NCBI GenBank assembly: GCA_028023455.1
Contig: JAQFVV010000003.1
Span: 13,702,001-13,766,000, forward strand
Length of the DNA stretch: 64,000 bases
Origin: Epiperipatus broadwayi
Taxonomy: Eukaryota > Animalia > Onychophora
Direction: 5' to 3'
Below, piece by piece: positions 2,538 through 40,240 of this stretch. The number at the start of each line of letters is the position of its first letter. Position 1 is the stretch's first letter. Both the position numbers and the translations under genes were made by a program. The notes under the pieces were generated by a model. It was not told where the DNA came from. It searched no databases and saw only the letters and a program-made list of their open reading frames with translations.

Positions 2538-2612
2538 ATATGGATAAATAATATATAGAAAGAGTAGACCCAGTACAATATATTAAGTAGTATTTAACTT
2601 TTATATACGTAT

Positions 2613-5252
2613 TGTAATATTGTAGGCATTAGCCATACAAATATAAGCTCCTAAAGTTTAAATTTAGATTTCATTAATATGTAATCTTCTATATATTTTT
2701 TATATATTATTATTATAATGGTTTTCATTTGATTAAATGTTTTTTCTTTTCAAATGATATAGAAATTATAAATAATTTTCTTTAATAACAAGATAAATAT
2801 TTTAATAAATTGTAAATGTTTGTAAAAGAGAGAGGGAAAAGTATAAAATTAAATAATTTCTTTTGTTGTCTCTCTTCAATAATTGTTAACTATTTACCGG
2901 ATTTGATTTTAACTTTTGAAAAAAGAAAGATTTCAACATTTTTTAAAATTTTACTTTAATTAATCAGAGCTGTTTTTTTGTTCTTTCTTTTTTTCTATTT
3001 ATCTCTCTCCAAAGAAAAGTAGAATATATCAAATTAGCCTAATTAATCTGATTATCATTTTCACTTTTTGCAAAAATTTTTTAATTAAAAACAGGAATGT
3101 CAAAAATTTTATGATTCTAATTTCAATTTTTGATTTGTTTTTCAATGTCAATGTTGAAAAAGAGAAATAACTGAACCACTGTATTTGTAAAAAAATAACC
3201 TAATTAATTATTACTAATTGTATCATGTTGGAGATTGTGGTTGGTTTAAGGTAGGTTTGTTCCTAAAAATAATCAGGTGTGTGCATTGGTCAGAAGACCT
3301 AAAATCAGCCTTACACCAACTGTTAAAGAGGACAATATAAAAAAACTCTTGATCCAGCTGCTGAAGGTAGTAGGAGAAAAGACATTCCTAACACAACTGC
3401 TAAAAAAGAAAGAGGTCTTATTTAAACTAAGTTTTAATGAAGCTTTTAGCACAATATGAGTCTAGTTATGAAAATGTTTTATGTAATGAAAATCTTGTGC
3501 TAAGTTAGCTAAAAGCTAATATTTTACTCAGTGTAACACACTTCACTGAATAAAACAGAAGAAAAATGCTCCTAAAGTAATCTGCAACCATATCTTCAAT
3601 CAAGACCATGAATCTCTATGTTATCTTCATCAGAGAAATTTTATCAGAAAAAAAATGGATAAATTTTTAATGTTTGTTAACCTGCAAATGCTGCATATAA
3701 AAATAGGACAAATTTAATCATGTACATTGTATAGAAGCTTTCAAGAAAAAAACTTACCTGGAAAGATGGGAAGTTATAACCAGAAAGAACTCTAATAAGA
3801 ATAAAATCATAGTTAAAGGTATTTTTTATGTGCACATTGTATTTGTATTTATAATTACAAAGGATTATTTTAAAGTGATTTTTTAAAAGCAAAAATTGAT
3901 AATTTTGAAAAATTTCAATAACTTAATCTTTTCTTGAAAAACATGTTTTTTTAAATATATTATCTTAATACAAATCCAATAAAATATATTCTTGTTAAAT
4001 TTTTTTACAATTATGCTGATAATAATTTAAACATGTTTTTTAAATCCATTCAATTTTTTTTTTCTTCAAAATTATGAGTTTTTTTGAAAAATTTAATTTT
4101 GTTAAATTTAAAATTTTATTTTGAAACATGTTTTTCTTTTCATTCATTTATTTTTCCCTCCAAAAAGTCAACAAAGGATTAGTTAAGCTAATTTAATGAT
4201 TGTTATCTCTGATTTTAAAAATGTTGTTTTTCCAACTTTTGCTTATTTAAAGAAATAACTTAATGAATTAAAAGTTAATAAAAGTAAATAGAAATCAATT
4301 GGTTAATATAATTTTTTATGAAACTATTTTTTTTTTTGATAAAATGAATGTTTAAAATTCCATATTATATTATTTTTTTTATTTATTGATAAAATTCTTT
4401 AAAAAAGTATTTTTATCTTAATGGTTTTATTTCTCCAGCTATCTGTTATATGAATTGGCAGGGCAGTATATGTGATTTGTTTCAATAGTTTAGGGATTTT
4501 AAAAATATGCCAGTAAAGCTATTTAATTATATCAGATTAAACCAATAAATTATTTTGAATAAGCTTTTATATTCAATATTTATTGCTTGCTCACAGCAAG
4601 TTTAGAGTTCTTGCTTCCTGAGCTAGATTAGAGCAGAATGGTTACTTATGAAGATTAGAAGTTTATATTAGTGTTTTGTCATACAAACGATAACCAAAGA
4701 TGGCACAATGGCATATCCATTAAAATTCATGCACTACATTTTATATATTTTTATTATTAGAAATTAAGTTTATAGTTTGCCACTGCATTAATGGGACTAT
4801 ATGGCCATAATATTAATGATGATCATCATGTTTCTGTATCATTATTTTTTGTCATATTCTAATGAATTAGCATTTAAGTCTGTGCATCCAAATTATTGTT
4901 TATATAATCTTCCCCAAGTTTGATAGTGGCTAGATAAGCAGCCTGTGTATAATGCACCTTTTTTATTCCTAGTGGACCCATTTCAAATCCAGTTACAAGG
5001 CTGACTGTTAATTTTATGATTGTTGACTGTTCTTTGCTTGTATAATGCTGATAATTAATGATTATTTTTGTTGAATGCTGGTTGAACATGTAGTTAGTTT
5101 TATTATTTGCTGATCTCCCATGTTCATTTATTTTGATTAGTCTATGGGGAGGGTGATGGTTTCCCATCTCATAATTCAGCCCTATTATACTGTGTACTGT
5201 TACAAATGGGTCCATATAACTCTTGATGACCCATTCTTTCAGTACCATTATA
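2613..5252 (+). repeat. 5' LTR of element A (~2.64 kb)
   Basis: Colinear with 7794-11606 along its length once two insertions in the latter are removed. TG start, CCATTATA end, followed by the PBS. Confidence 0.75.
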
Positions 5253-5254
5253 AA

Positions 5255-5273
5255 TAGTGACCCAACTGTGGGA
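5255..5273 (+). promoter_or_regulatory. Primer-binding site, tRNA-Lys-like (degenerate)
   Basis: TAGTGACCCAACTGTGGGA lies 2 nt after the LTR end. It resembles the tRNA-Lys(CTT) 3' complement TGGCGCCCAACGTGGGGC with bulges. A near-identical motif occurs at 33383-33402. Confidence 0.55.
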
Positions 5274-6689
5274 ATTAGAACTTGAATCTCAGAAATACTC
5301 CTGAAAAACAAAGCTCTGTATTTTAATGCAGAATAAATTTTAAATGTATTAACTGTGAAATGTGACAAGGGTATAGATGATGATTAAGTTGTAATATGAT
5401 TATAAATTATAAAATAGATATTAACGTATAATTAAAGAGTTCATATTTAAAGTTGAACAAAAAATCAAAGCATGACTTTTAGAGATTGGATTGAGTTTTT
5501 GACTGGTTTGTTTAGCTGTACATTTATTACTGGTGATGAATGGAGGGTTTTGTCAATGGCTTGGGATGCAATGTTATCATGCAATTCTAAGAAGTGTTCT
5601 CTCATGCATTGTTCCAACACTCTCTCAGATTTTCATATTTCCTATTGTTTATCATGGTTCAGATAATTTAGACCTGCCATGATCTCCAGCTTCTAAGACT
5701 CAAAGGAACAGTGCTTTGAAAAGATTTTTGCATTGTTATATTTATTTTGGATTGTAGGTAGCTTATGTATCTAAAGTAATATAAAGTTTTTGCTTTTCAT
5801 GCCACATTGCAGACTTATAGTCCGGTAGCTGGATTCTGTATCTATCCCAGAATTTCAAGTCACTATGCATTCTTTGGATATCAAATGCTCATGAGTTCTC
5901 TGAGAAAAGTTTTGACAAATAATTTGTTACATGATTTTTTTATACATGCATATTGTACTTAAAATAAAAATAAATAATAAAAATATTAGAGATTAAAGCA
6001 CGGGAAATAAATTAAATTAATCATATAAAACCAGGTATTGAGACAATAAGCTTTAAGAAAGGCAGATTAGAGGTAATAATATAGTAATGTTAGGTAGATG
6101 AAAAAGGATTGCATGGAAGAGGTGATGTTAAGCTTATTTTACGAGATATTTTTAAGTTCCCATTTGTATTTCTTGTGTGTAAAAATAATTTCATCATTTT
6201 TCTTCAAGATTAAAAAGTTCTATCATAGAAATATATATGCTGACAAGAGCCAATTGAAAAAGATGCACATAGAACATGATATTGAAAAAGATCAGCAATC
6301 AACTGAGGGAACCCAAAAAATTGAGGATATGATCATGTCAGACCAGTTAGTACAAATTTTTATGGACAATCAAAAAAGATTTTAAATAATATTTAAACAA
6401 ATGAATCAATAAAAAGAAGAGTATAATAAAAAAAGATGAAAAGAGAATAGTAAAAAAAAAAAAAAGAACAAAGAGGATAGTAAAAAGAGAGCAGAAAAAC
6501 TCAAATGCTGCTAATGTAAATAGAAAGCCATCAGCAAAGAGAAGATAATAAAAAAAGATCAGAAGAAATTCAGATGCTTTTAAAAAAAGTAGCAAGTAAT
6601 TAGCATAGTCAGACACTGTTTATAGAGATGGAAGAAATTAATTAGCAAAAATAATAAATGTTGTTAAGGAAAATAGAAGATGACAATCA

Positions 6690-7640
6690 AAAGATGTGGA
6701 TTAAAAATAGAGGAGAGTGATCAAAAAAAAGGCAATAGACAATAAAATAATGAACACGAGCATACAAAAAGCTGTCAAGAATCTTACCCAAATAATGGAA
6801 AAAAGAGCAGGACAAAAAATCAACCACTGTATTTATAAAGAAAACCAAAATATAATCCAAATAAGTGAGGAAAATAGAAAAAATATTGAGGAAACTGCTC
6901 TGAATAAATATAGCATGGATGCTGAAGCCATTAGTAATGATATTGATGTCTCTGATATGAATAATCATTCAGATAAAAAAAAAAACAGAATAAAAAACCA
7001 GATGTTATACATTATGTGTATGATGTAATACAAGATGAAGTTAAAATAATAGCTCATATTATAGATAAACTAGAGGAGTTAGATCAAAAGATAAATGTAA
7101 CAAAAGAATTGCAAAAAAATATTGAAAATGATCAAAAAGATATAAAAATAATAAATCAAAAGATAAAGAATATAAAAGAATTGAAATGAACCAAAAAGTA
7201 CAAATAATAGAAAAAGTGGAGGATGAAGTATCACCAGAGATATACAGAATGGATACTAGAAAGATATATACTTAGTTCTTTCAAGGCCAGATAGTACAAC
7301 CAAAAGCATTGGCAACTAATTCATTAATAAATAGTCTAGTATTAAAAATGATTAGGTATAACCTATCACATAACTTAGGCCAAATGATTATGTATATTGA
7401 TGAAAAAGTGTTGATCTGATAGTTGAATTGCTAAGGCAACAACCTCATGAAAGATTAGAAAGAGATTATGGCTCATCCAACTTTCAAGAAAGATAATTCC
7501 CAAAAATGAAAATAATAGGGCTGTTGAAAGTAATAAAAACAATACAAGGGAGGAGGTCTCATAGAGAAGAAAGATTAATAATAGTTCGTGAAAGTAGGAA
7601 CAATCTGAACATATCACAACCATACTCATATAAAGATTAA
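6690..7640 (+). pseudogene. Degenerate gag-like ORF of element A (coiled-coil N-terminus, capsid CTD-like C-terminus)
   Basis: A-rich frames with stops and frameshifts: ORF 6717-7028, then DVIQDEVKIIAHIIDKLEELDQKINVTKELQKNIEND (coiled coil), then LRPNDYVY..KSVDLIVELLRQQPHERLE resembling a gypsy/Arc-type capsid C-terminal motif. Lies between the PBS and PPT. Confidence 0.45.
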
Positions 7641-9413
7641 CAATTATGCATGGATTAGAATACTTACCTGAAAATTCTTATAATCTTGGGAAGAAACCAG
7701 TAATAAGAAGACCATTAAAATATATAGTTAAAATGATGAAAAATAAAATATGGAATCGCATTTCATTGTTTTATCAATTTAAATGCAGGGGATTGTAATA
7801 TTGTAGGCACTATCCATACCTATATGATAAGCTCATAAATTTTAAATTTAGATTTAATTAAAATTTATTTTCTATGTTTTTTAATATAATAATGGGTTTT
7901 CATTTAATTAAAGGTTCTTTTTCTTCTCAAATAATATGAAAATTCTAAACAATTTTTTTTAATTCTCATACATTTTTTTATTTTTTATTATAAGATATTT
8001 TGATAAATAATAAATGTTTGTAAAAGAGAGAGAAAAATATAAAATTAAATAATTTCTTATGCTCTCTCTTCAATAATTGTTAACTATTTATTAATTTTGA
8101 TTTTGAAAAGTTTATTGAAACTTTTGCTTTTAACTTTTGAAAAAAAAAAATAGATAAAGTTTTATATTTAATAGTATTTAAAAAAAAAAAGAGAGAGAAG
8201 ATTTAACAATTTTTTTTAAAATGTTTAATTTAATTGATCAAAACTGTTTTCTTTACTTCTTTCATGAGTAGTGTTTATCAAATCAGTCTAATTAACCTGA
8301 ATATCTTATTTTCATTTTTTTCAAGATAATTTTAATTAAAAACTGGAATGTCAACAATTTTATGATTCTAATTACTTGTTTTTCAATGTCAATGTTGAAG
8401 GAGAGAAATAACTGAACCAATGTAATTGAAAAAAAAAAAGACCTAATTGAATATTACTAATTGTGTCATGTTGGAGACAGATTGTGATCGTTTTGAGACA
8501 GGTTTGTTAAAAAAAATTAGAGATGTGCATTGGTCAGAAGACCTAAGTGTCTGGTAAGAAGTCAATATTAAACCAGCTGTTGAAGAGCACATTAGGAGAA
8601 AAACTCTTGATCCAGCTGATGAAGAAGACGGTAGAAGACATCCCTGACACAACTGCTAAAAAAGAAAGAAGCAGAAGTCTTATTTAAGCTGTTGAAGTTT
8701 TAACCAAATTGTTAGCACAATATGAGTTTAGTTATGAAAATGTTTTCTACAATGAAAACCATGTGCTAAGTTAGCTAAAAGCTAACATCATCTTCCTCTA
8801 TTTAACCTGCTTCACTGGAACAAAATGTAGAGAAAAAAAATATCCATAGAACATGAATCGCTATGTGTTAGCCTCATCTGGAAAATTTTATCAGAAAATA
8901 ATAGATATATTGTTTGCTGTTTGTTAAACTGAAAATGCTGCATACAAAAATAGGACAAATTAATCATGTACATTGTGTATAAGCCTTCAAGAAAAAAACT
9001 TACCTGGAAAAACTGGAAGTTATAACCTGAAAAAACTCTAAATAAAAATAAAACCATGGTTAAAGGTATGTTTTGGTTTTATGTGCACACTGCATTTCCA
9101 TTTATAATTAAAAATAATTTTTTTAAATTAATAATTATAAAAGCAAAAATTGATAATTTTGAATAATTTCAGTAACTTAATATTTTTTTGTGAAACATGT
9201 TTTTTTAATCCATTCAATGTTTTTCTTTTCATTCATTTATTTTTCACTCCAAAATTCAACAAATGTTAAGTGAATTTAAAGATTACCTCTGATTTTAAAA
9301 ATGTTTTTCCAACTTTTGGTTATTTAAAGAAGTAATAAATTAAAAGTTAATTAATTTAATGAATAGAAATCAATTGGTTAATATAATTTTTTATAAAACT
9401 ATATCTATATTGA

Positions 9414-9864
9414 AAACTTAAGAGCATGCTAATGCTCTAAACAAGCTTTTTTATTATTATGATAAATGCTACTACAAGAGAAGGCATTCAAATCATCTTT
9501 ATCTTAGATTGTCCCCATTCTCAGACTGGTTTCGACCTATGGGTCTCTTCAGTGAGAAGTTGGGACATTAGATTCAAAAAACCAACTCAAGTTAAGCATT
9601 TATCTAAAAGATAATTCTCAAGAAGAAGATCTAAACCTAAGTTGGTTTTCTGAATCTAATGTCCCAACTCCTCATTGAAGAGACCCATAGGTCAATACCG
9701 ATCTGGGGATGGGGACAATCTAAGATAAAGATGATTTGAATGCCTTCTCTTGTAGTAGCATTTATCATAATAAAAAGCTTGTTTAGAGCATTAGCATGCT
9801 CTTAAGTTTACATATTAGTAATTGCAAGCTATATATGTCATGTGACATCTCACTTTTTATTATT
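9414..9864. mobile_element. PLE-derived fold-back insertion with hammerhead motifs and a 16-bp TSD
   Basis: Inverted arms about 9414-9590 and 9637-9809. Direct repeat ACTATATCTATATTGA at 9398-9413 and 9865-9880. Absent from the sister LTR. Confidence 0.8.
9518..9558 (-). ncRNA. Minimal type-I hammerhead ribozyme, core intact
   Basis: Minus strand reads TTCTCA CTGAAGA GACC-CATA-GGTC GAAAC-CA-GTC TGAGAA: 6-bp stem I, CUGANGA and GAAA core, 4-bp stem II, short stem III, GUC cleavage triplet. The mirror copy at about 9668-9708 (plus) has core mutations. Confidence 0.85.
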
Positions 9865-10214
9865 ACTATATCTATATTGATAAAATGAATATTTAAATTA
9901 TCATATTATCAGGTCTTTTTTTTCTATTTAATAATTGTTCAAAAACATTTTTTGTCTTAATAGCTTTATTCCTCTAGCTATTTGTTACATGAATTGGCAG
10001 TGTATGTAACTTGATTTCAATACAGGTTAAAATTTAGATTTTTAAATTATGCCAGTAAAGCTATTTAATTAAAGCATACTAACCTATAAATTATTTAAAA
10101 TTATTTAGAATAAGATGTTATATTTATTTATTTATCTTTGGCCCACAATAATAGTTTATAGAGTTCTTGCTTCCTGAGCTAGATTAGAGTAGAATCGTTA
10201 TTTATAGATATTAA

Positions 10215-11051
10215 CCCTCTAGCATTCTGACAGATTTATTTATTTTCACTTGCTTTAAGCTTTCAACTTTCACTTTAATATCAAACCATTATTACTTATC
10301 AGAATATAATAAATTTAATCTCATTTGACAGATATTTTTGTTTAAAAATTAAATAAATTTTAAGAAATCACATTTGATTTTCAGGATTATTTTAAAAATT
10401 AGATTTTAATCAAAACAAAGCCCTGGCATGTCATCAAATTTCAGGGGAAGCAGATATCTTCTTTGTTTGATGTTTGTTTTAAAAACTTGAATGAATTATT
10501 TTTAATATCTAATAAATCTATCAATTTATGCTTTAAAAGTTTAACATTTTTTCTTAATTTTTACAATATCACTAAAAATTATAACTGTCTATTGACACCA
10601 TTTCTAGACAGTTGTATTTCCCACAACCTTAATCTCTATGGTAATATTACACAGAAGAATATATTCTTTTATATTTAAAAATAAAACACTTCTATAAAAA
10701 ATAAATATGTAATAATTATGATACAAAAATAATCATAAAATTTCCAAAAAATCAAATTTTTAGACCATCGTAATATTTTTTTGAAGTAATCTTGCAAAGT
10801 TTAAGATTGCCAAACATACAATGACTAGGCATTAATGTATGGTTTTGGATACTTTGAAATTCCCATTTATTCAATTATCCTAATGTCTTTTGAATTTTTT
10901 TGATATTAAAATATTAAAAAAATATGTGTGAATTTTAAAGGTGTAAAAAAAATGTTAGCAAAATTTCTCAATAGAAAGCAAAAAACGCAAATTAAATTTC
11001 TAGATTTCTCAGATGTAGGTCCAACACCTGGTAGAAAGCGTCGGTTAAGGG
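10215..11051. mobile_element. Possible non-autonomous piggyBac-like insertion
   Basis: TTAA-CCCT at the left end and AGGG-TTTA at the right end. The segment is missing from the homologous 5' LTR. TIR similarity beyond 4 bp is weak. Confidence 0.4.
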
Positions 11052-13006
11052 TTTATATTAATGTTTTGGACAACCAGATGATAACCATGGATAGCATATC
11101 TTTAAAGTCCATGCACTATATTTTATATTTGTATTATTATTATTAGAAATTAAGCTTATAGTTGGCCAGTACATTAATGGTACTATTTGACCAAAGCATT
11201 GATGATGATCAGTATGTTTTTGTATCCCAGCATTATTTTTTTACTGTTATATTCTGATGGATTAGCACTTACATCTGTGTTTCCAAATTATTTACATCAT
11301 CCGCCCCAAGTTTGGCAGTGGCCAGATAAGTAGCCTGTGCATAATATACCTTTTTTATTCCTAGTGGACTCATTTCAAATGCAGTCACAAGGCTTATTTG
11401 ATTTTATGATTCTTAACTGTCCTTTGCTTTTTGTTGATTGTATAATGCTGATGGTAAATGATTATTATTTTGTCTAATGCTGAATGAACTTGTAGTTAGT
11501 CTTATTCTTTGATCTCTCATGCTCATTCCTTTTGATTAGTCTATGGGGCTGATTTTTTATCTCTCCTTATTTTTACTATGTCACCTCTCTTTTCTATACC
11601 ATTACAACATATATAGACACTTACAATACAATATAATTTGGAAAATGTACACACAAAGACATTGACTTAAAAACAATTAACAAAAGAGTAGAATATTACA
11701 ATTAAAGACAATACAATAATAAATCAAAAAAGAAACCATATTTTCTGAGTGAGTGTTCACTGAAAAAATGACCAAAAGATGATTCAAAATGCATTCATAC
11801 TAGTAGCCATGTTCTTAAAATGTATGAATTCAAATATACAAATTTCTAATTTTTTATTTAATATTTTTTTCAATAGCTAGTCTATGACTACATAAGACTA
11901 CTGCATAAATAGATTTGTCTTTAATGCAAAAATATATACATGATTAATAGAACTACAAATAATAGAGTAATTATTGTATGATTTTCATTATCAGTTTAGC
12001 ATTAAATATAAATGGACTAGTGTGGATTATTTAGTAAAAAAATATTCTGAATGATATAATTATTTACAATTAAAGTTTGTGAGTTTGACAAATCTTGTTT
12101 GCACTTTAGATGCTATCAATAAAATGCAATACATTAATTCAATCATAGCTATTTTCAATAGCTAGATTTGATCCTTTCTTTCTAATACACAGTATAGAAA
12201 AAATGTCCTGTGCAGTTTAATATTGAGGGAGAGTGGCAGATGCAAACGCTAAAAGGTATCTAATCCGATTATTAGCTGAGAAAATTAAAGGAAACAGTTG
12301 GGTTTAATCTGCCACTTGAATAATCAATAGACAAACTTCCAAGCATAAAAAAATATTTCAATTGTATTTATAATCATTTACTCATAATTAACACTACTGA
12401 ATAGCAAATTTCTCTTCATTTATTTAACCGTTTACAAGAGCTTAATATAAATTAAGATTTCAATATATAGTTCTTGTGTGGCTTCTCTCAATGCATTATT
12501 TTTCTTGTTAAAATGGTAGAGTTTTGCTAGACTTTTAAAATTGATACATTATCTAAGGGGGATTATAAAAGAGAAAGAAAAAATAATTTAGGGCAAGAGG
12601 AAATAAATGCATATTTAGTTAGTATGGAATGAGTAGCATTAATACATAATGAAAGATCATTAATATAATTTCTGCATACAATTTTACACAATTATTATTT
12701 TTTTAAATGAATCATCTTATATAAAATTACCTTATTACTTAAAGAACAGTGACCATTAAACAAAACAATGTGCATGTATATTAAATCGAAGATTTTCACG
12801 GGCTACAGATGTAAATTAAATATTATATGGATATATAAACTGACGTTTCAATTAGGTCACACTGATATACAATAATAATGACCATTCTATTAATAGATAA
12901 TAGAAATAATAATTATGAAAAATTATTTTGATTAATGACTTAAAATTTTTTTTAAAAATAGAAGGTAATTTGCATGTACCATCACGTTTGTTGATACATT
13001 CTAGCC

Positions 13007-13404
13007 CAGGGATCCCCAGCCCTATATCCGAGGGCACCATGGCGCCCGCAGACAATTTTACGTATGCCCGCCGCTATTCGAACACGATAAAAAATTATTT
13101 ATCTGATACAAATAAATTTAATTTTTAAAATTTCTTATAAATTATTGTATTATATTGTAATCAAATTGTAGGGTATACTATACTTTTACAGCATAAAAAT
13201 ATAAACATTAATTATATGTTAAAATTTTATTTTTGAAATAAATATTTTTTTGTACATTATGTGTATTATTAACAATATCCAACTATAAATTTACATTAAA
13301 AAAATAAATAGTGCCTGCCATCTGGTTGAAAAAATAAATGGTGCCCGCCACCTGGCCGGTATTATAGAATGTGCTCATAAGTGCAAAAAGGTTGGGGACA
13401 CCTG
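13007..13404. mobile_element. hAT-type MITE (398 bp)
   Basis: TIRs CAGGGATCCCCAGCCT and AGGTTGGGGACACCTG. Perfect 8-bp TSD TTCTAGCC (12999-13006, 13405-13412). Confidence 0.9.
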
Positions 13405-13412
13405 TTCTAGCC

Positions 13413-13674
13413 TTTTAAAGATCTCAATGGTTCCTCTGATCTGACATTTTTGGAAAATGTCACATCTTAATAGTATTCTTGTTTTAGAAAAATCAATACT
13501 ATGATCTGTATCTATAATATGAAGAGATAATGCTGCTGGTGTTGAGTGTTTTTTAATTGCCTTAATATGTTTATCTCTTCTAGCATTGATGCGACGATTA
13601 CTCATGCTTATATAGAAAGTTTTACAAATGTTACATGGATTTTCATAAACTATGTAACATTTATAAAGCTTCAT
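13413..13674 (-). pseudogene. Penelope GIY-YIG endonuclease fragment
   Basis: IVYENPCNICKTFYISMSNRRINARRDKH...AALSLHIIDTDHSIDFSKTRIL...RGTIEI matches the PLE pattern VYxIPCxxCxxxYIGxTxRxLxxRxxEH...SALxxH...H..F....E.I. It continues as ECINKRDGTCKLPSI beyond the MITE. Confidence 0.85.
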
Positions 13675-13778
13675 ATATAGGCATGAGTAATTGGCATATC
13701 AATACTAGAAGAGATGAAAATATTAATGCAGTTAAAAACTGCTCATCATCAGCAGCATTATCTCTTCATGTTATAAAT

Positions 13779-14553
13779 CAGTGGTCTTCAACCTTTTCAC
13801 ATGGACCGGAGTAAGGATAAGATTTCATGAACCAGTAGAAGTCTACAGATAAATTTTCTTAAAGATGTAAACTGCTTAGCCTTAGATGAGCATAATTGTT
13901 ATAACTGACCAAAACAACACACTAGTTACTGTGTATTGTAATGGTGTTGCTTATCTTCACATGCTGAACACTCTTTCTCAAGTTGTGCAGTCATACTGCT
14001 ACAGAAAACAGTACAATAACAATCATTCTCATTAATGTGTCTGCATTGCTACATTTATTATTTCATTGTTAAAACATGCAAGAAAAAAATGTTATTCACC
14101 TGAATGTTGGGAAATATCATAACTAGCATAATTACATGACAATGATTATGATAAATGTAATATATATATTTAATGTTAAATATACAAGATGAAGTTATGT
14201 ATATATGGCTGTATTTTTATATTGGACTAGTTTGTATAATAAAAAACTTTTTTTAAAATTTTTTTTAGAAAAATAATAAAAAATTTAATTCTACCCCCCA
14301 ATAAACATCTGTGATAACTAGAAAAACAAATTAATTTATGTATGATTGACTAGATTTTGTTTTTGTTCTGTTTCTTTTTTTTTTTAATCGGGTAAAAATG
14401 AGATGAAAAAATAAATAAAAATTGTTTATATTAATTAAAAGTTTAAAATCTTATTATTTTGTTATTACAAACTTTCCTGCCAGTCTAGTGTAACCGGCAG
14501 AAAACTTCTGCGGCCTAGCGCCAGTCCGCAGACCAAGGGTTGAAGATCAACTG
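13779..14553. mobile_element. hAT-type MITE (775 bp)
   Basis: TIRs CAGTGGTCTTCAACC and GGTTGAAGATCAACTG. 8-bp TSD TTATAAAT/CTATAAAT. Splits the Penelope GIY-YIG sequence. Confidence 0.85.
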
Positions 14554-15558
14554 CTATAAATACAGATCATAGTACTGATTTTTCTAATATGAGAATACTA
14601 CCCAGATGTGATACTCTAACAATGTCAGATTAGAGAAGCCATTGAAATCTTTAAAAGGCCAGAATGTATCAACAAATGTGATGATATATACAAATTACCT
14701 TCTATTTAAATTTTTTTTTAAAAAAGTCATTAATCTAAAATGATTTCTCATAATTATTATTTATATTAAGAGAATGTTCATTATTGTTATATGCGTTTAC
14801 AGTCCCTCTACAATTATTTTATATTTATTATCCAGTTGCTGACCAATATGACCTAGTTGAAACATCACTTTATATATATATTAATAAATTATACACGGAC
14901 GGATGTACCTGGATATTTCATATAAATAAATACTTAATAAAGAGACAGGCAGTAAATGTAAAAATCATGGAATTATGGTAAGATTAGTCTTTGAAAGTGT
15001 TAGTTGACAAAAACTACGAAGGCAGTCGAAAGTGCTCCTAAGTGGATAAAAGTTTTTTAAAGTTGTACTTTACATATATTTGGTTACTACAAGATTACAT
15101 ATATAACTTTGAAGAAATGCAGATATCGAATAATATCATTATACATATATATATATATATATATATTATAACGGCATCTGGGTAATTCCTTTAGAATGCA
15201 CGAGGACTTACATGCTGTTGTTAATGGGTATTAGAAAAAACGAGATTGAGTATATTTAGAATAAATGTCCTAATAAACTAAGAAGATCAGACTGGATCTC
15301 AGTTAATTTTATTTATTCTCAACAGTAATATCAGCCATATTTTGTGACTATCATTTCCATAAAATAGGTTCAATCAAAGAAAGGATTCATCCCCAGTCAG
15401 TATAAACATTCTTTATTTATAAAAGGTCTGTCATATTGCAGATTAAGTTGCCACTGAGTTCAAACCCTTCACTACCTTTTTGACAATAGACTCTTTGTTC
15501 AATCATAACTGGATAAAGTGAAAATGGCAATACTTCACAGAGTAATCACTTTTGCTGA

Positions 15559-15684
15559 TACAGTTAGTATCAATAATTATCTCCAATCAATATTATATAT
15601 AAATAAAACTAACATTACTTCTACAGTTAGTATCAATAATTATCTCCAATCAATATTATATATAAATAAAACTAACATTACTTC
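15559..15684. repeat. 63-bp tandem duplication inside the 3' LTR of B
   Basis: TACAGTTAGTATCAATAATTATCTCCAATCAATATTATATATAAATAAAACTAACATTACTTC occurs twice (15559, 15622). It accounts for the repeated ORF 15518-15706. Confidence 0.9.
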
Positions 15685-15817
15685 TATTACATACATAACG
15701 ATATGAGAACGGACTAGAGATTACTACTAAATTAATAAATCAAATTTATTTTATTATTACAATGAGATTAGCCCTGAATATTTACATAATAAGTATGCAA
15801 TATAATATTTCAACTCA

Positions 15818-15818
15818 T

Positions 15819-15859
<41 letters not shown>

Positions 15860-15872
15860 AATAATAATAATA
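15818..15872. repeat. (ATC)n/(ATA)n microsatellite
   Basis: Run of ATC repeats followed by ATA repeats. A (TA)n run also lies at about 15145-15166. Confidence 0.9.
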
Positions 15873-17829
15873 AAAACCCATTAAAACAAAAGTAATGATA
15901 CACATTTGTAAAATATAGATGGATATAATTTAGTATTGACAGAAATATACTATCCTTTGATTCTAGTGGAATCTAATATTTTATATTTATTTTTCGTACA
16001 ATAATTTATTTTAGACCTACTAATAAAATGGAATAACAAAGTCTTAATTATTTTGTGATTAGTTTCCTTCGGGGTTCTTATTTTGAGCTCATGTATTGGA
16101 GACTTGATTTCATGCATGACTTTAAATTTATGAAATCGTTCAGTTCAGCTGGTTTCTGGGTTAATATTAATTCATGAGGATATTAGAAAATATATGGTTA
16201 TGATGATTCTTGATTTCATGTAGCTTCAGCTGTTCAGTTTGGTTGTGTTCCTGGACTACCTTCGGTTCATACACTTTGGAAGATTTAATGGCTACTCTCT
16301 TATTTTTCTGGTTTTACACACACATTTACCATATTAGTCTTTGGTAAATGGTTGTCAGGATAACAGCAAATATCCTTCAAAAGTAAAGGGCTTATTTTCA
16401 GATTCTTGTTACATTTCAGGGCCGATTAATATATTTCTCTTTACAACTTGATCACTGTCATGGATGGATCAGAATAAACACACACTGGAGACTTAGCCAA
16501 CTATGATAAAGATAATTACAGGATATTAACATTTTTTCCAGTAAATGTATCAGCATTATGTCTGTATGTTTCAGCCTTTGGCAAATTTATATCGGTATAC
16601 TAATTTTCCAGACTTCGCTGAATGTTTTCGCCCCGACTTAAAAAAAAAAGATGGCAAAGACAAGTAAAAGAATACTTTATACAAATTTTTTTTTAGTTAT
16701 TTTATACTTTTTTTCTCCTTACTGATTTTTGTAAAGTATTTTCTAATCAGACATCTATTTGGCACATACATTTTTGGCTTATCTGGGTTTATTTTCTTAC
16801 TTTATTTAATTAGTTTTATTTCCTTAATTACCATGATAATTACATTTTAGTCATTAATCCCATCATCTAAAATTTATATAGTTAATCAAATTTTAACAGA
16901 GTGTCAAGATATTCAGTAAATTCTTATATATATTTTCTATTTCCTTAATTAAATAAATCTGTATTTCCTGCTTCAAATTCATTTTATGTCTTTACTTTTA
17001 CCTTGACCAATTTTATTTCTTTATGCTTTTTAAAATTTGTCATACTCAGTCACCATTATTAAATTATTTGCTGCTGCTGGACTTACAAACTATGCTCATT
17101 TAAATTAAATAAATACTATTTGTTTATAATGAAAAAATGAAACAAAACAATAACAAATTAATATGGTTCTTCATTTTAAAGAATTGACTGGTACATAACA
17201 ATTAGACAGCAACTCATAATTCTGAGATAAAGAATCCAATCACTGGGAAATGAGTTTACAACACATCATGAACATTAAGAGGATTCTAGCATTATAAGCA
17301 ACTTACTATCATTCATATAAAATAATAACACCGTGCAAATTGCTACCTTGTGTTAAATTCTGAGGCTTACAGTTTAGAGGCTCATGTTACAGGACCAATT
17401 TAACTGTTCATGTTCATGAATAGTAACCACAAAACTATGCATTGTTCTTTCAAGGTCTAGAGGCTAATAAAAGTAAAACATAAAAGTTAGGTTTACTAAC
17501 TTTTGAGACTTGAGAAAATATAAAATGGGTGGGTGCAGTGCTGAAATAGAAATACACCATAAAATTTCATGAAAACATTGCATTTTCAAATCAATGACAG
17601 AATCTTTCATCCATCATCAGTACTAAAAACATATCTTTCAAATCTCAACAATTAAAAACTCCCCCCCATCTCTGCAAAAATCTTTTTTCTATTGCATTTT
17701 TATTATTACCCCTTTTTATATTTATATCAGGAGGATAACTACACACCATTTTAAGTGACTGAGGTTCAGTCAGATCAATGATAGTATTGATTTTTATCTT
17801 ACACATGATCCAATTCTGGTTCATCATGA

Positions 17830-18560
17830 CTCTTATCTTATCAGAACTGTCAGTAGATCTCCTTTGTTTATATCTCCATGTTAACCAGTATACCATAGTT
17901 ATGTGATTCATTTTCTCTTTTATATATTTCCTTTAGTTGGTGTCTAAATCTCCTTTCCTTACCACCCTTTGCAGTTTACTGCTGTTGAATACATTTAAGA
18001 GTTGCTCCAGTTTTCCTGCCCATTCCAATAAGCATTTGCTGTATATAATTTGGAAAATTATGCCTCATTGTGATCATGATTTGATTTTTGGATACTGGGT
18101 TAGCTGTCAAAGTCTTTAGCTTTTCCACATGTCTTCTAAAAAATAGTAGTTACTCTTCTCTAGGTCAGCATTTTTCTTGTGATAAGGTGTTTAACCCATC
18201 CAGATTGCTCCAGTAATATTTTAATATAGCCTGTTTAAATTCATAAAGCTCTGAGGCTGCCTACCAGGCTTGGGATGCACATTGTAGGTATCTTATGTTA
18301 TGGCTATTTTTGCTTCCCCTGCTAAATAATTCATGCTGAAGTAGCTCTCTAAACTGCTGAGATACTTTATAGAAACTTCATCTACTTGCCCTGAAAACAT
18401 CTTTATCTTTAAAAACTGATTAACTATAATAGAATTGTTGTGGAGGGTGTGTGTGATCAAGTTAACCCTTTCTAGCTCTACTTCATGTAAAACTCTATTA
18501 ATAATTTTTTTCTCTGTTGTTAAGACATCCATATATTATTTTTGATTGGCTTCTATTCTC
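17830..18560 (-). pseudogene. Degenerate Ty3/gypsy gag (capsid domain) of element B
   Basis: Joined frames give IKMFSGQVDEVSIKYLSSLESYF...KIAI-RYLQCASQAW*AASELYEFKQAILKYYWS and YFLEDMWKKLKTLTANPVSKNQIMITMRHNFPNYIQQML. This is the retrotransposon-gag pattern FSG..LE.YF..A..W..FK..YWS..YF..L.P..FP. Confidence 0.8.
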
Positions 18561-18705
18561 TGGAATGTCTTATCATCTCTAGCTATATTTTATTACCTGA
18601 TTTAGAACAATAAATTATTCCCTGCATGAATTATATTTTCCAGGGATTATTAAATTGATCACATTAACTATATCAAGAATAAATGGATAATAGTTATTTT
18701 ATCAA

Positions 18706-18723
18706 GTCCCAAGTTGGGCGTAA
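18706..18723 (-). promoter_or_regulatory. Primer-binding site, tRNA-Lys(CTT) type
   Basis: TTACGCCCAACTTGGGAC, 2 nt after the LTR end, matches TGGCGCCCAACGTGGGGC at 14 of 18 positions. Confidence 0.7.
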
Positions 18724-20411
18724 AATGTTATGGCATCCAGGTAACTCCTTTATCCACATTTATTAAATTGTACAAGGACTTACACCCATGGGTTAATGGG
18801 TATTAGGAACAATCATGCTGAGTATATTTAGACTGAACATGTTAACAAACTATAATGATCAGAATGTGTCTCAGGATTACTTATTCTCAATACTAACACC
18901 AGTTATATTTCCTGACTATCATTCCAAAAAATAGGTTCATTAAAGAGAGGGTTGATTTCTTGACACAATAGAACTTTAGAACATTTATAGGATGGTTCAA
19001 TTCCCTTCCTCATTTTTTTTGCATATGTCTCTACACTCATCCACAGCTGATTTGAGTGAACATGCAATACTACACAGGGTAATTAATCTCTCTGTTGATA
19101 CAGCTAGCATGAATAATCATTTATTTTCAATCAAAAATATAAAAATCTAACATCTATCTCTGTATTGCAGTTACACAAATATTGATGTAAGAACAAAGAT
19201 TTAGAAACTAATTATTAATAAATCAAATGTATTTTACTATCATAATCAGATTAGTCCCATATACTTATATAATATTTATACAATATAATACTTCAACCCT
19301 TGACATAATAAAAAAAAATAATTAAAAATGTACAAAAATATTGACTGATGCACATTTATGAAATATAGAAGAAAAAATATTAAATATCCTATCATTGGAT
19401 TTTAATACTTTAGGTATATTTTATTTTAGGCTTACTAATAAAATGGAATAATAAAGTCTTATCCATTTTTAATTATTTTGTGATCACATTTTGTGTCCTT
19501 TGGGATTCTTCAAGTGCATGTATTTGTAGACTTGATTTCACATAGTTTTAAATTTATAAAATCGTTCAGCCAGCAGGTTTTCAGGTGAACTTTAATTCAA
19601 GAGGATATTAGAATATGTGTGTGATTATGATGTAGCTTCAAATAATTATTCAGTTTGATCAGCTTTCTAGTCTATCTTTGGAACATTGGGTTGGAATGAT
19701 TTAAAATACTGTTCCAATGTTAATTGGTCAGATATCCAATATTATTCTCTTATTTTTCTGGTTTTACACACACATATATTTATCATATTATTTTAACAGA
19801 ATAGCCTTTGGTAAATGTATGTCAGATCAATAACAAATATCTTTCAAAAGTGATGGGCTTACTTTCAGATTCTTCTAATATAATAGGACAGACTTGGGAC
19901 ATTCTCTTTACAAGTTGATCACTACATCATTGAACCAGTCAGAACAAACACACATTGGAGACTTAGCCCATGATGACAAAGATATTTATAAAAGAGATAT
20001 TTATCATCTTCATGGATATATTACCATTCCTTGGTGGCTAATATATTAACATTATGTCTACGTTTCAACTTTTGGCAACTTCACATCAGCATACCAGTTT
20101 CTTCAGACTTCATTGGTATTTTTGTTCCTGACTTTAAAAAAAGATGGCAAAGACAAGCAAGAGAAAACCCTATCAATTGATTTTGAACTCATTTATACTT
20201 TTTCTTGTCACTGATTTTTGAAAGATATTTTTTTTTAATCCAACATGTCTGGTATATACATTTTTGGTTTATTTAAGATTTTTTCTTACTTTATTTAATT
20301 AATTTTATTTCCTTAATTACATTGTAATTACACTTCCATATTTATCAATCCTATTATCTAAAATTTAGACAATTCATCAAATTTTAATGAAACATCAAAT
20401 TATCCTGTCAA

Positions 20412-20483
20412 GCATTGGTGGCCTAATGGTTAGCATAGCTGTCTTCCAAGCAGCTGGCCCAGGTTTGTTTCCCGGTCAACGCA
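20412..20483 (+). tRNA. tRNA-Gly(TCC)-derived retrocopy / short SINE (probable pseudogene)
   Basis: GCATTGGTGGCCTAATGGTTAGCATAGCTGTCTTCCAAGCAGCTGGCCCAGGTTTGTTTCCCGGTCAACGCA closely follows metazoan tRNA-Gly(TCC), with a damaged T-arm. Leader TGTCAA, trailer TTTGACATATGG, A-run, TSD ATCAAA(T/G)TATCC. Absent from the sister LTR. Confidence 0.85.
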
Positions 20484-21059
20484 TTTGACATATGGAAAAA
20501 AAAAATCAAAGTATCCATGACTACTTAATTCCCTCCCCCCCTTTTTTAAATATATATACTCTATTTATTTAATTAAATAAATTTGTATTCCCTCTTTTAA
20601 ATTTATTTCATTTTAGAAATTTTTATTTAATTTAATTTAACTAAAATAAAATGGTACTTACATATTAATCCTGCTATGTAAAAGAGATGGTATACCTTTT
20701 CATATTCATGATAAATATCTAACTTTGCGATCCTGTCAAATAAACCCTGCAATCTCATCCAATAACATCATAAATTTACACACTTTCATGTATTGTTCAG
20801 GTTTTGTTTGGACAAGTTCTTCTCAAAGAATTTTTTTACTTCAGTGCTGATTTATTTTTTCCAATTTTCTGATTAATACTACAATTTTTTTATTTTTTTT
20901 TAAAACAGTACAAAATGTTGAACATTTGGAGTTTACCCACTAATGAGATCAATGCGATCAAATACATCCGCACTTCGGACAAGCAATAGTATTGTAATGT
21001 TTGAGGATATAATAATAAAATAGGCCTTCATAAGGAAACATGGTTGAAAGGTTCCAGAA

Positions 21060-26400: not shown

Positions 26401-28184
26401 AAATCCACACACTGTAGATTCATCCATATATTTGCAATTTTTTTACTTGGAAATTATTTTTTTCTTGATGCCATATTCTAACTTTGTTTTCTGTCTCATA
26501 GTGAAAATTAAAATTGTTCTAAAAACAAAATCAAACTTACAGTAGTAGAAAAGTCACTTTCTTCAATTTTCTCATTTAGATTTTTTTTTTTTTTTTTGAT
26601 AGCATTAATCAGCTTTTCAAAAAGATCTTGAAATGTTTTGGGCACATGTAGCCTATATCAAGCAATAATGTTTATAATAGCATTGTTGTTAGCAGTTTTA
26701 CAGCCTTATTGTTAACAATTTTTCTTCTTCTAGCTAATGATAATTAAAATTGATCTCTTAAAAATAAAAACAAACTAATGCTAATAATAAAAGTCACTTT
26801 ATTTCTGCTTTCTCATTAAAAAAAATATTTTTTTGATGACTGACTTTAAATCAGCTTACTAATTCTGATTTTTTAAAAAAACCTGAAATGCCTTGCAAAT
26901 GTGCATCCTATATCAATTATGGGATTCTTTATAACATTTTTTGTCTGCTGACAGTCTTATAACTATTTTGTTTGGATTTTTTTTTATGGCAATACTAATC
27001 GGTTTTCTAACTCCGTTTTTCTGGTTTATGACTAAAATTATTATATATATGCAGCAGAATTAAAATTAATAATAAATATATTTTTATTATTAAAGACACA
27101 AATAAAAAGATTAATTAAACTTAAGTCTTATAATACATAATAAAAGTAATCTTCATTGTACAAATCTTAATTTAGTGAAAAAAAAAAGTTCATTGAACAA
27201 TTTGTTAAAAGTATATGCCTTCATTATAAATATGTTATTATAGATTAATATAAAGAATTTTGAAAAGAAATAAATGCAAACTTCACTAAAGATGACCTTA
27301 GTTGTGATCGACAAGACTATACCACAAGCATTTGGACATCATATTTTTGACCGTTTTTCTTGTTTTTTTTTCTATATCTGTTATAGACTCATGAAAAAAC
27401 ATTAGTAAATGGCATTGGTATATAAGTTTAAATTCACTGATCATTGCAAGTTTGAAAAAATATGGATAAAAATATCCCTCCCTCCTAATCGACCAAATGT
27501 AAGTTGAAAATCAATTTCATTTATAACATAGTCTTAAAGCCTTTCATTGGTTTTTTTTTTTTTTTTAATAATGATTGAATAATTAGGATTTGCACCACTT
27601 ACTAACAAAGTTAATAAACATTTAATGGTATATTCAAAAGATAATGAGACTATAAAAATAAAGAGGCTATTCCAGCCACAAATACGATATGTATTTATAT
27701 ACTCACACATATGTACATATTTCAGAAAACAAAAAACACGAAGCATTTACAAACTATTAAAATAAACATAAAACTTCATAAGGATTATCTTTGGCAGTCT
27801 GCTCACATCTGCATTCATTTAATTTCACTTGGTTGATAACATTTTCCAGGTGCATATATATAGATGAGTTTAAAACGCAAGTATTTATAACAGTGGCAAT
27901 TTAATACGGTTTCTCACTACTTGGTAATCGAGGAGAGTAAAAAAAAAAACAAGTTGAATATTAATTAAAATTTGCAATTAAAAGATTTATACTTTTTTTT
28001 TTCACTTTTTCCAATGAAATAGCGCAAATGACTAGCTCTTTAATTACAACAATAGCAACAAAAATAAATACGTTAAATAAAGTCCCAATATACATAACAA
28101 TTTAAGACAAAAATAAATAAATAAATTTTAAGCTTAATGTACTGCATACATATACCAATATATATGGGTGATTGAATAAACAAG

Positions 28185-28320
28185 TATCATGGACATCATT
28201 GAAACAATTAAGAAGCTGAAATGAAGTTGGGCTGGATAAGTTGCTAAAAAATGAGATATAGACTGTCAAAGACTTAAAACTGGCTTCCAAGAGATTACAA
28301 TGACCTTGAAAGAAAATCAT
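28185..28320 (+). pseudogene. RTE-type LINE C-terminal fragment
   Basis: DIIETIKKLK*SWAG*VAK resembles DII..I..LKW.WAGHVAR. Confidence 0.55.
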
Positions 28321-30149
28321 ATAGATAAATGGGGGTGGGGGGTGGAAAAGTTTGTTGAAGTGATGTAAACAAAAAGAAGAAAATGAATTAAACTTGACGA
28401 AAACTTCATCTTATAGGGAATGGATAACAGTTCAAAACGATAATAATATATATTAAAAAAAATCTCATAGTTCAGTACTTTGTTGAATTTTCCTACTACA
28501 TCCATGGGCTAAAATTTAAACCTGACTGAATTTTGATAATTTTCAAATATCTGGCATATAAGTAACCTAACCATCTGTCTACTATTAATCTTTAAATCTA
28601 AGGTATTAAAGTTAAGTATAATCATTTCATTTATTGATTACACTTTCAATCTTGTATGGAAATCTAGTGATTTTTACTTCTCCTTTAATAGTGATTCAAA
28701 GAGTCTGCATAAATTATCTTCATTGCTTTTCTATTTTTTATAATATTTTATTATTAATAATAGTAATACAATGATGTAAGATCTGCTGCAATGAATACTC
28801 TTTAAACATTTCATTAAATTTTTTACAATAAACACAAATGTTCTATCAAGCACTATAGAAACAGGCATCTTTATCATATTTTGTAAGATTTAGTTACGAA
28901 TTTAATTCACTTATTTGTTTATTTATATCTCTGGCAGTGAAAATACAGTATATATATATGTAATTTTTCTGCTATGAACATTTAATAATTTTAAAAAACA
29001 ATTAGGAAGCTATTTGTTGACATAAAAATAATAATTTTCAAATGAGAAATTATGAATATGGATGGAATGGTTAAATCAATAAATGCAAATGCTACATTGT
29101 TTAACATAGCACAAGTGTACCAAAATATTTCAATGCATTTTTATTTCAACATAATGATTGAAATTTACTATAATTTGTTTACATTAAGCCCATGCATGTT
29201 TTTAAAAGTTTAAAAAAAAACCTGAAGTTTTTACAAGTGATTACAGTTTTAACTAGAAAAAGACTGAATTTATGTTTTTCAAGTTTATATGTAAAGTTAT
29301 AAAATAAATTTTTTTCATAGTATAGTGATCAAAGAAATAATGGAAAACAAACACGTTTCCTGCACTATGGATGAAGGCTACATACCTTCAATTTGTTTAT
29401 ATTAAAGGAGATTGCATATTTTTTGTAGGCATAAAACTTTTTATGCTAACATTATGATTTGTAGTTTTCAGTAGAGAAAGATTACTTATGCATTTCAAAT
29501 TTATATGTATAATATAAAAGTTAAATTACATTAATTTTATATTATTTTTATACATATTTTTTTGATTTATTATTATATTTTTTCTGTTTAAATAACTGTG
29601 TTAATGGTAATTTTAATATAGGCTGTGATCTTGAACAGATTATCCTTGAATACATGTATTTTATTGTATGCTAGAATGAATGGAACCTATAATTAATGAG
29701 TTTCTGGAATCAATAAAGTTTGTTCTAGCAGACTTCTTTTTATAAGACATAATTTATAATTAATTATGGTTATTTTAATGGAAAAACATTTCAAACTGAG
29801 CAAGTATAAACAGTCAAATTATTTTCATAAACTATGCTAAAATTTTAATAAAAATATTGTCATTCACTAGCTATAATTCTACTCCATATACTATTATAGT
29901 CTGTATTGGAATTCTATATATTATTTTCTTTTGTTTCTTTTTTTATCCCATAAAACTAGTTTTCATAATACTTTATCTCTTAACTACCTTATCTGAAATT
30001 TTATCATTGCTTTTATCATTTTCATTTACTAATAACTTTGAAAAACATTTTTTACTATTTTGTGATTTACTTGTTTTTGCAATATCAGTCTTAATTCTCT
30101 CATTTTTTTTACCAATAACTCTATTTTAAGATCTGCATGATTCTATTCT

Positions 30150-31665: not shown

Positions 31666-32959
31666 TTAATGCCCATTGATTACTCAAACTCACAATAGAT
31701 GACTTTAGAGTAGGCTAAAAACAACTATCTTGGTATTTAATTTTCTTACCAAAGGATAGACTGAGTTCTCTAAACCTAATATTAAATCTATATAACTATA
31801 TAAATGAACTAGTTTGGGTTGAAAACCTTATTTTTTATTTATTTCAGGTTAATATCTTGAATAGTTTATGGGAGTAAAAAATGATCAATAAATGGATGAG
31901 GATATCAGCTCCAAATATGAATCACAGTCTTCAAGGATGGAGGCAAGTAGCCATGATGTCCATGTGTGCCATATAGTTTTTCATAAATAAAAATACAACT
32001 TTTGATATCTGGTTACTCAAGTTGTGCTCTTAGTAGTTTCATAATATTCAAAACAAAAGTATTGTGTTGCCTGCCTAGAAAAAAGACATTAAAGTTTATT
32101 GACTAGACTGCTGATTAAAAACAAACCAAATATTCAGAGGGATTGCTTTATTGTTTATCCACAGAAATTGAAATAGGTAATGTACTTCTACTAACTTCAC
32201 CTCATATAGTGTTATTTAGTAGTTATCTTAAAAGCTAGTTCCTGCAACATCTGCCTACATTGTTGCTTTGACTTTGTGATCAGATGAGGAATCATGAATA
32301 GTTATAAGTTACATCAACATTTTTATGTTTATTCTTTTGCTGTATAGTTGCAATAACATTTAATTACTTGTAAACAATCATTTTACAGTAATCACTTGAT
32401 TTTATACTCTTTTTCATTAGATGAAAAGTAAGACAGATATAAAAATAGCATTATTATTTTTAATATTCTACATTGCACTAAATCTTAACTTTTGTTTTTT
32501 TTCTGTTTACCTTCACATGTATTATATCAGTTATTTACAACCTAAAGACTATTTTTCTTCTCTATTACTTTCTCTTCATTGATTATACTGATACCTAACA
32601 AGGAAGGAATAGGTATGGGATTTCTAGAAAAATATCAATGTCTTTATTTTATTTTGGAATGATGGATTATTTTAAGAAAGTCATATGGTACACCATTTTA
32701 TTAAGAAATTTTAAAGAAATTTAATGAACCTATTATTAAAAATAATTTTTAAAAGTATAAATTTTTTATTTTTTTACTACTTTGAATATATAATGTCTAT
32801 ATTTTTTTCAGTTTTATTACATTCTTGGGTATATTACTTTGCTGATAATATATACTACTTGACTCTTGCATAATGCAAAATAAAGTTATTATAAAAAGTA
32901 TGTATTAATTCAGTTTCCAAAAAGTCAATATGGCTGCCAAAACCATGAAAAGGTTAAAG

Positions 32960-40124: not shown

Positions 40125-40240
40125 ATTTTTTATCCATATGTTTTAGCATTGGCTGGGAAGCAAACCATGACAATCATCTGCAAGCAACTGCTTACTTGCA
40201 AGACAGCTGCGCTGACCTCTCGGCTACCAAATGCTTGACT
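40125..40240 (-). mobile_element. tRNA-derived short SINE copy
   Basis: Minus strand reads GTCAA-GCATTTGGTAGCCGAGAGGTCAGCGCAGCTGTCTTGCAAG...CCCAGCCAATGC-TAAAACATATGG-A-rich, with an imperfect flanking direct repeat AAAAATA(G/A)T(C/T)ATTTA. Confidence 0.7.

Follow-up and report, generated by a model that had tools for sequence, protein, structure and literature searches.

Non-autonomous long terminal repeat (LTR) retrotransposons form a known continuum of TRIM, LARD and TR-GAG elements (PMC13570524). LARDs, in the definition of Kalendar et al. (2004) as it is given in PMC13570524 and PMC2997562, are non-autonomous elements that exceed 4 kb, have long LTRs and show no recognisable gag or pol in their interior, and a LARD-like element has been reported in an animal, a chaetognath (PMC2997562). 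TR-GAG elements of Coffea, Arabidopsis and the Triticeae keep a GAG open reading frame (ORF) while the enzymes are missing, and are termed 'semi-autonomous'; the size range proposed for them is exceeded by GAG-only families of the same study (PMC13570524). Here we describe two elements, A and B, of this known kind in a window of 64,000 nucleotides (nt) from the onychophoran Epiperipatus broadwayi (GenBank assembly GCA_028023455.1, contig JAQFVV010000003.1, positions 13,702,001 to 13,766,000 of the forward strand; coordinates below are those of the window). We read them as the dead relics of two pol-less LTR retrotransposon families, most likely already without protease, reverse transcriptase (RT), RNase H and integrase at insertion, and give this reading a probability of about 0.55.

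In size and layout both elements fit the LARDs: element A measures 9.0 kb, with LTRs of 2.6 kb and an interior of 2.5 kb, and element B about 5.5 kb, each LTR taking up about 1.85 kb. LARD interiors, however, are described as non-coding, whereas A and B show a statistical trace of a decayed reading frame. The LARD class is further defined by conservation across a whole family. The order of LTR, primer-binding site (PBS), single ORF, purine tract and LTR, with no pol, recalls the TR-GAG elements, from which A and B differ in having frames without a demonstrable gag domain, in LTRs and a total size far above those of classical TR-GAGs, and in their host, an AT-rich animal genome with mariner, long interspersed element (LINE) and Penelope-like debris rather than a plant. 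The TRIM elements of Echinococcus (PMC4558846) are likewise invertebrate non-autonomous LTR elements that retain a PBS and a purine tract, but TRIMs stay below about 1-1.5 kb in total and have short LTRs, against 5-9 kb for A and B. A PBS like TGGCGCCCAACGTGGGGC (PMC8775094) in both, together with TG...CA termini, a short target duplication and a purine tract ending in a G-run in A, recalls Ty3/gypsy elements and retroviruses primed by tRNA-Lys1,2. The RT and integrase by which a superfamily is assigned are, by contrast, lacking in A and B. The LTRs of both are several times longer than typical Ty3/gypsy LTRs.

Structure and ends of the two elements

The features of element A, of the inserts in its 3' LTR and of a further fragment of its family are the following.

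2613-11606, plus strand: element A, whole, 8994 nt
2607-2612, plus strand: 5' target-site duplication ACGTAT, read directly
2613-5252, plus strand: 5' LTR of 2640 nt, starting TGTAAT and ending ATTATA, from self-blastn blocks, pair statistics and an alignment of its end with those of the 3' LTR and of the third copy
5255-5274, plus strand: decayed tRNA-Lys-like PBS, the 20-mer TAGTGACCCAACTGTGGGAA, 2 nt past the LTR end
5290-6097, plus strand: non-coding leader, without reading-frame signal
5417-5864 (core 5463-5716), plus strand: block X, the sole stretch common to A and B
6098-7790, plus strand: decayed reading frame of about 560 codons in 10 frame segments, rich in K, E and N, from the stop-avoidance test described below
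7781-7792, plus strand: polypurine-like tract AAATGCAGGGGA, 1 nt 5' of the 3' LTR, read directly
7794-11606, plus strand: 3' LTR of 3813 nt including two nested inserts, ending ATTACA
9414-9853, no strand assigned: nested palindromic insert of 440 nt, with a flanking duplication of about 27 bp seen against the uninterrupted 5' LTR
10214-11050, no strand assigned: 837-nt block present in the 3' LTR of A only, the gap between blastn blocks 4336-4657/9877-10213 and 4661-5176/11051-11571
11607-11612, plus strand: 3' target-site duplication ACATAT, read directly
32935-33402, plus strand: third family-A fragment, the last approximately 450 nt of an LTR followed by a PBS (33383-33402), nhmmer E 1.7e-26

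Self-blastn recovers the two LTRs of A as four collinear blocks (2611-5176 against 7792-11571, E 0.0 to 1e-110), which are 82.1% identical over 2286 ungapped columns, with a Kimura two-parameter (K2P) distance of 0.205 and 50 gap events. The statistics of both LTR pairs come from block-wise alignment, a global MAFFT alignment having misplaced the 3' end of A's LTRs. Both LTRs begin TGTAATATTGTAGG, the inverted termini of the element are TGTAAT...ATTACA, of the TG...CA type, and the flanking target duplications match at 5 of 6 positions, the sole difference being a G/A transition in a CpG. The 3' LTR measures about 2536 nt once its two nested inserts are removed, the ancestral LTR was about 2.5-2.6 kb long, and the interior occupies about 2.5 kb (5253-7793). 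The original prediction of a plus-strand element at 2613-11606 with LTRs of about 2.5 kb is thus borne out by the LTR pair, the termini, the target duplication, the PBS and the purine tract.

The third family-A fragment carries the PBS TGGCTACCCAATTGTGGGAC 2 nt after its LTR end, with a match of 15/20 to the PBS of A. Because it repeats the junction between LTR end and PBS, it fixes the end of A's LTR and shows that family A was mobile. An nhmmer search of the sequence downstream of its PBS found nothing A-like. Both family-A sites resemble the tRNA-Lys1,2 PBS, which is TGGCGCCCAACGTGGGGC (PMC8775094), yet have two 1-nt insertions in common, and the initial TGG has mutated to TAG in A and to TTA in B. 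The tRNA-Lys-like primer site that had been proposed for both elements accordingly stands, with a Lys-like 20-mer in A and in the third copy and a match of 14/18 to the Lys1,2 PBS in B.

Several other observations concern this part of A. At 5195-5257 the 5' LTR has an apparent tandem duplication of about 50 nt (ACTGTTACAAATGGGTCC..., then ACCATTATAAATAGTGACCC...) over its own LTR-end/PBS junction, which in the third copy is single, unlike that in A. The longest open frame of the window, 169 codons on the minus strand at 4877-5383, runs antisense across the 5' LTR end and PBS of A. Chance alone would give about 0.04 frames of that length in 64 kb; the corresponding stretches of the 3' LTR and of the third copy are interrupted, its protein is no better conserved than the DNA, and it is probably due to chance. 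Two metagenome scans with conserved motifs of the A LTR returned 0 matches and 5 matches, the latter all unrelated.

The nested inserts in the 3' LTR have histories of their own. A palindrome of about 400 nt (9411-9812) is 88% self-complementary and contains a type I hammerhead ribozyme at 9518-9558 on the minus strand (Rfam RF00163, 36.1 bits against a gathering score of 34), with a mutated hammerhead copy in its mirror arm. From its length, the target duplication of about 27 bp points to target-primed insertion, Penelope-like or retrozyme-like, rather than to cut-and-paste. The 837-nt block is either an insertion in the 3' LTR or a deletion from the 5' LTR, and has no second copy within the 64-kb window.

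Element B lies on the opposite strand, and its features are given here in its own 5' to 3' order.

15167 to about 20640-20770, minus strand: element B, whole, about 5.5 kb
18726-20638, minus strand: 5' LTR as backed by homology, including a nested short interspersed element (SINE) of about 130 nt
20389-20517, plus strand: tRNA-derived SINE in the 5' LTR of B, from nhmmer copies and an Rfam tRNA match of 30.4 bits at 20412-20483
18706-18723, minus strand: decayed tRNA-Lys-like PBS TTACGCCCAACTTGGGAC, 2 nt past the LTR end (18726), matching the Lys1,2 PBS at 14/18
17730-18700, minus strand: decayed reading frame of about 320 codons in 5 frame segments with 4 in-frame stops, from the stop-avoidance test
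17208-17728, minus strand: block X, containing the G-run 17673-17659
15167-17018, minus strand: 3' LTR as backed by homology, about 1.85 kb, its start lying between about 17018 and 17200

The repeats of B align in blastn at 15191-16920 against 18763-20411 (E 1.5e-176) and at 16926-17018 against 20550-20638, the nested SINE explaining the break at 20411-20550. They are 73.8% identical over 1629 columns (K2P 0.328, 37 gap events). The 5' LTR ends ...GCCATAACA at 18726 on the minus strand, and the PBS that follows it (18723-18706) is the sole site in the window with no more than 5 mismatches to the Lys1,2 PBS, none occurring in 10 shuffles. Of the LTR termini of B only the 3' one, ...ATAACA, is defined; the 3' flank is a (TA)n run where a target duplication would lie. 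Past 17018/20638 the LTR similarity ceases, a comparison of 17020-17700 with 20640-20900 scoring 14.5 against 15.1 +/- 2.1 for shuffled sequence, while a neighbouring control comparison scored 41.5 against 17.4. The simplest reading of these alignments gives B LTRs of about 1.85-1.9 kb around an interior of about 1.7 kb (17019-18725). Alternatively, the 5' LTR may have lost its first approximately 640 nt and the leader of A may contain a B-like U3 fragment. A candidate LTR start, TGTTATTG at 17155 and 20767, was rejected when the ensuing alignment gave no support.

These results keep B as an LTR retroelement, on the strength of its repeats and PBS, and correct the dimensions first proposed for it (LTRs of 2.2-2.5 kb and an interior of about 1.05 kb). 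They also displace its supposed purine tract and LTR start near 17660, and with them the supposed junction between gag and purine tract: the G-run taken for the tract, AGAGATGGGGGGGAG (17673-17659), aligns with AGAGATTGGATTGAG (5481-5495) inside the leader of A. It stands about 640 nt from the LTR boundary that is backed by homology, and that boundary itself is only A-rich.

The alignment of the two G-runs belongs to block X, a stretch of 250-450 nt that A and B have in common (blastn E 6e-15; nhmmer E 2.5e-10 and 2.6e-10). The block behaves as non-coding, since its mismatches show no period-3 pattern (34/86, 45/87, 29/87) and tblastx finds no match in it. In A it lies 180 nt past the PBS and precedes the reading frame; in B it follows the frame, at about 1 kb past the PBS. 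Neither the LTRs of A and B (blastn, nhmmer) nor their interiors outside block X align. A read-through comparison of the two frames, with the residue X placed at the frame breaks, was equalled by 31/500 shuffles (p ~0.06), and tblastx was also non-significant. Judged from these comparisons, A and B are two different families with a tRNA-Lys primer type and one non-coding block in common. The view of them as two insertions of one lineage does not survive such unalignable LTRs and frames without detectable homology, and two elements that belong to different families give no grounds for inferring a replicating lineage.

Reading frames and the search for pol and gag

Traces of coding were sought with a frameshift-tolerant stop-avoidance test, in which the cost of stops and frame switches along a sequence is compared with that in 300 dinucleotide-preserving shuffles. 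The costs, the shuffled means with their spread and the number of shuffles that reach the observed cost were as follows.

A frame, 6098-7790, sense: cost 13 against 27.5 +/- 2.7, reached by 0/300 shuffles
A frame, 6098-7790, antisense: cost 13 against 16.1 +/- 2.3, 34/300, not significant
A leader, 5290-6097, sense: cost 12 against 11.7 +/- 1.9, 205/300, no signal
B frame, 18700-17730, sense: cost 9 against 13.8 +/- 2.0, 4/300
B, 17730-17030, sense: cost 11 against 9.9 +/- 1.6, 258/300, no signal
LINE positive control, sense: cost 10 against 22.5 +/- 2.5, 0/300
A 5' LTR negative control, sense: cost 37 against 38.2 +/- 3.2, 136/300, no signal

The sense strand of each element thus retains a decayed ORF, with a signal that is significant in A and modest in B. 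Stop trinucleotides are about as frequent in A as in its shuffles (150 against 159), so the effect is one of phasing and not of composition. An unbiased window-wide scan placed 6401-7800 of A on the plus strand (z -4.3) second only to a decayed LINE (z -4.8), and gave z -3.1 (17401-18200) and -2.8 for B on the minus strand. The frame of A extends to the purine tract, and that of B, about 1 kb long, adjoins the PBS. A codon-position chi-square test was discarded after the LTR negative control had scored 'significant' as well.

No search recovered pol. Stop-to-stop pieces of at least 24 amino acids (aa) from both strands of both interiors, 91 in all, were scanned against Pfam at E <=0.1 and <=10, and even at E <=10 none matched gag, protease, RT, RNase H, integrase or any other retroelement family, in keeping with the earlier statement that recognisable pol is absent. 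In a Pfam scan of 123 pieces from across the window, the only match was the RVT_1 domain of the LINE. The power of such a piecewise scan is limited by decay, the gap density of the LTRs implying a frame break about every 90 nt. An RT piece of comparable decay, that of the LINE in the same window, was nevertheless still detected (RVT_1, E 5e-4). Half of the K2P distances puts the divergence of each copy since insertion at about 0.10 substitutions per site in A and 0.16 in B, a level at which remnants of RT or integrase should still show. The interiors, at 2.5 kb (A) and 1.7 kb (B), are in any case too short for pol.

By position, gag is the likeliest identity of the two frames, and segments of B at 18400-18066 have, by eye, a gag-like spacing of F-G-x...W/Y-L...L-x-x-A-x-x-W...F-K. 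Homology searches for gag, whose power is limited on pieces of 30-100 aa, were uniformly empty: neither B 18296-18535 nor A 6711-7025 had a match in word searches, a full HMMER search of 1.84 billion protein representatives with the best 80-aa piece of B gave 0 matches, sequence searches of the PDB with pieces of the interiors gave nothing relevant, and no CCHC knuckle (CX2CX4HX4C) occurs anywhere in the window. AlphaFold models the piece from B as a helical hairpin (pLDDT 82), for which Foldseek against the PDB returned generic hairpins only (E >= 1) and no capsid match. What had been called a decayed gag is therefore upheld only as a statistical reading-frame trace (0/300 for A, 4/300 for B), while homology to gag or to any other sequence finds no support in any search.

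Origin of the pol-less interiors

That A and B were without pol when they inserted is favoured over later deletion because no coding remnant of an autonomous interior survives, because their LTRs have suffered no comparable deletions, and because both elements retain both LTRs, the PBS and block X. Beyond the clear insertions, the LTRs of A have at most one or two indels of more than 100 nt, which makes the loss of pol through many deletions unlikely. An element of this kind would have been transcribed from its own 5' LTR, while an autonomous partner, probably Ty3/gypsy-like, would have supplied the proteins for packaging and reverse transcription of its RNA. The minus strand would have been primed at the PBS by a tRNA-Lys of the host and the plus strand by the purine tract, and the partner's integrase would have joined the TG...CA ends to the chromosome, leaving a short target duplication.

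Several observations weigh against this account. The window offers only one full copy per family, with which a single large deletion after insertion is possible, and the third A copy has no interior sequence in common with A. The frame of A abuts the purine tract, where an intact element has the end of pol or env, and no search identifies the frame of either element as gag. The position of block X, upstream of the frame in A and downstream in B, misfits a simple shared architecture, and the low-powered piecewise Pfam scan also missed the pieces elsewhere in the window that look like mariner and GIY-YIG sequences.

Much the same observations would suit a history in which both elements were autonomous at insertion, Ty3/gypsy-like or BEL/Pao-like, and later deletions removed pol and most of gag, leaving a leader and end fragments of the ORFs and implying no non-autonomous lineage at all. 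The great age of the elements (K2P 0.205 and 0.328) and their many indels (50 and 37 gap events), a region that is a dump of decayed transposons, a frame in A that borders on the purine tract like the end of pol or env, the divergence of the third copy after its PBS and the lack of kinship between the two frames are all consistent with it. We nevertheless hold such a history to be doubtful. More than 90% of an autonomous interior is gag-pol, so that a remainder of 1.7-2.5 kb should show recognisable pieces, of which none was found; the 5 kb of LTRs in A have passed through the same span of time without a comparable deletion; and two events would be needed in adjacent elements, each sparing both LTRs, the PBS and block X. 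Local segmental or tandem duplication of AT-rich DNA that merely resembles LTR elements would accommodate the low identity of the repeats (74-82%) and the ill-defined 5' LTR boundary, purine tract and target duplication of B. It is highly improbable, and already close to refuted, given the TG...CA inverted termini of A, its 5/6 target duplication, a PBS and purine tract exactly at the junctions, an unlinked third copy that repeats the LTR-end/PBS junction, and a repeat in B whose end lies 2 nt from the sole good match to a tRNA-Lys PBS in the window.

The loss of pol before insertion, which we prefer, leaves room for two more ambitious versions. The elements may have been TR-GAGs in the strict sense, whose single ORF is a true gag encoding capsid and kept by selection, such that they supplied their own capsid and borrowed only enzymes. 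The sense-strand frame traces between PBS and purine tract, the gag pattern seen by eye in B at 18400-18066 and a tRNA-Lys PBS that fits gypsy-like elements speak for this version, which we hold to be about as doubtful as later deletion: there is no Pfam gag at E <=10, no zinc knuckle, no match among the 1.84 billion representatives or in the word searches, the modelled structure is a generic helical hairpin without a capsid match, and the frames of A and B are not significantly alike. Less likely again is the presence in an animal genome of long-lived semi-autonomous gag-only elements with LTRs of 2-2.6 kb, in which at least two families, no longer recognisably alike in LTRs and ORFs, would have kept the tRNA-Lys site and block X, the latter as a candidate packaging or dimerisation signal with which to hijack one autonomous partner.

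Genomic setting and significance

The window is AT-rich eukaryotic DNA, with a G+C content of about 24-32% in 2-kb bins, in which long open frames are scarce (only 3 ORFs of at least 110 aa across 64 kb) and decayed mobile elements fill the space around A and B. The decayed LINE (49150-50800, minus strand), with an RT remnant at about 49.2-50.8 kb (minus strand; RVT_1, E 5e-4), provides the sole Pfam RT match and the strongest reading-frame trace of the window, and is adjoined by a mariner-like transposase remnant (51500-52400, minus strand) recognised by eye only. Between A and B, at 12800-14900, lie inverted duplications (13510-13641/13647-13778; 12867-13006/14792-14657; 13405-13516/14664-14555), where open pieces resemble, by eye only, the terminal GIY-YIG nuclease of Penelope-like elements and have no match in Pfam.

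The SINE nested in B belongs to a tRNA-derived family of about 120-130 nt with 4 copies in the window by nhmmer (20389-20517, 63152-63271, 40125-40246 and 46971-47102), and the 'tRNA-Cys' called by ARAGORN at 46988-47071 probably represents one such copy rather than a functional tRNA gene. A repeat family of about 250 nt, unrelated to A and B, forms two inverted pairs at 34591-35321 and 56711-57207; the arms 34592-34845/35272-35019 are 97% identical and far younger than either element. Other reading-frame traces in the window-wide scan are at 28001-28600 (minus strand, z -3.7) and 43801-44600 (plus strand, z -3.3), the latter overlapping a tandem-repeat array (43965-44344) and standing just 3' of a weak PBS-like TGGTGCCCAACC at 43773.

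As matters stand, the locus consists of two old relics, both inactive, among other decayed transposons, and its main practical value is for repeat annotation, in which long LTRs without pol are easily missed or misclassified. If confirmed genome-wide, A and B would represent, in an animal, the large non-autonomous LTR elements with a single retained ORF, a class catalogued almost wholly in plants, and block X, present in two families that do not otherwise align, would offer a concrete candidate for a cis signal through which such elements borrow the machinery of a partner.

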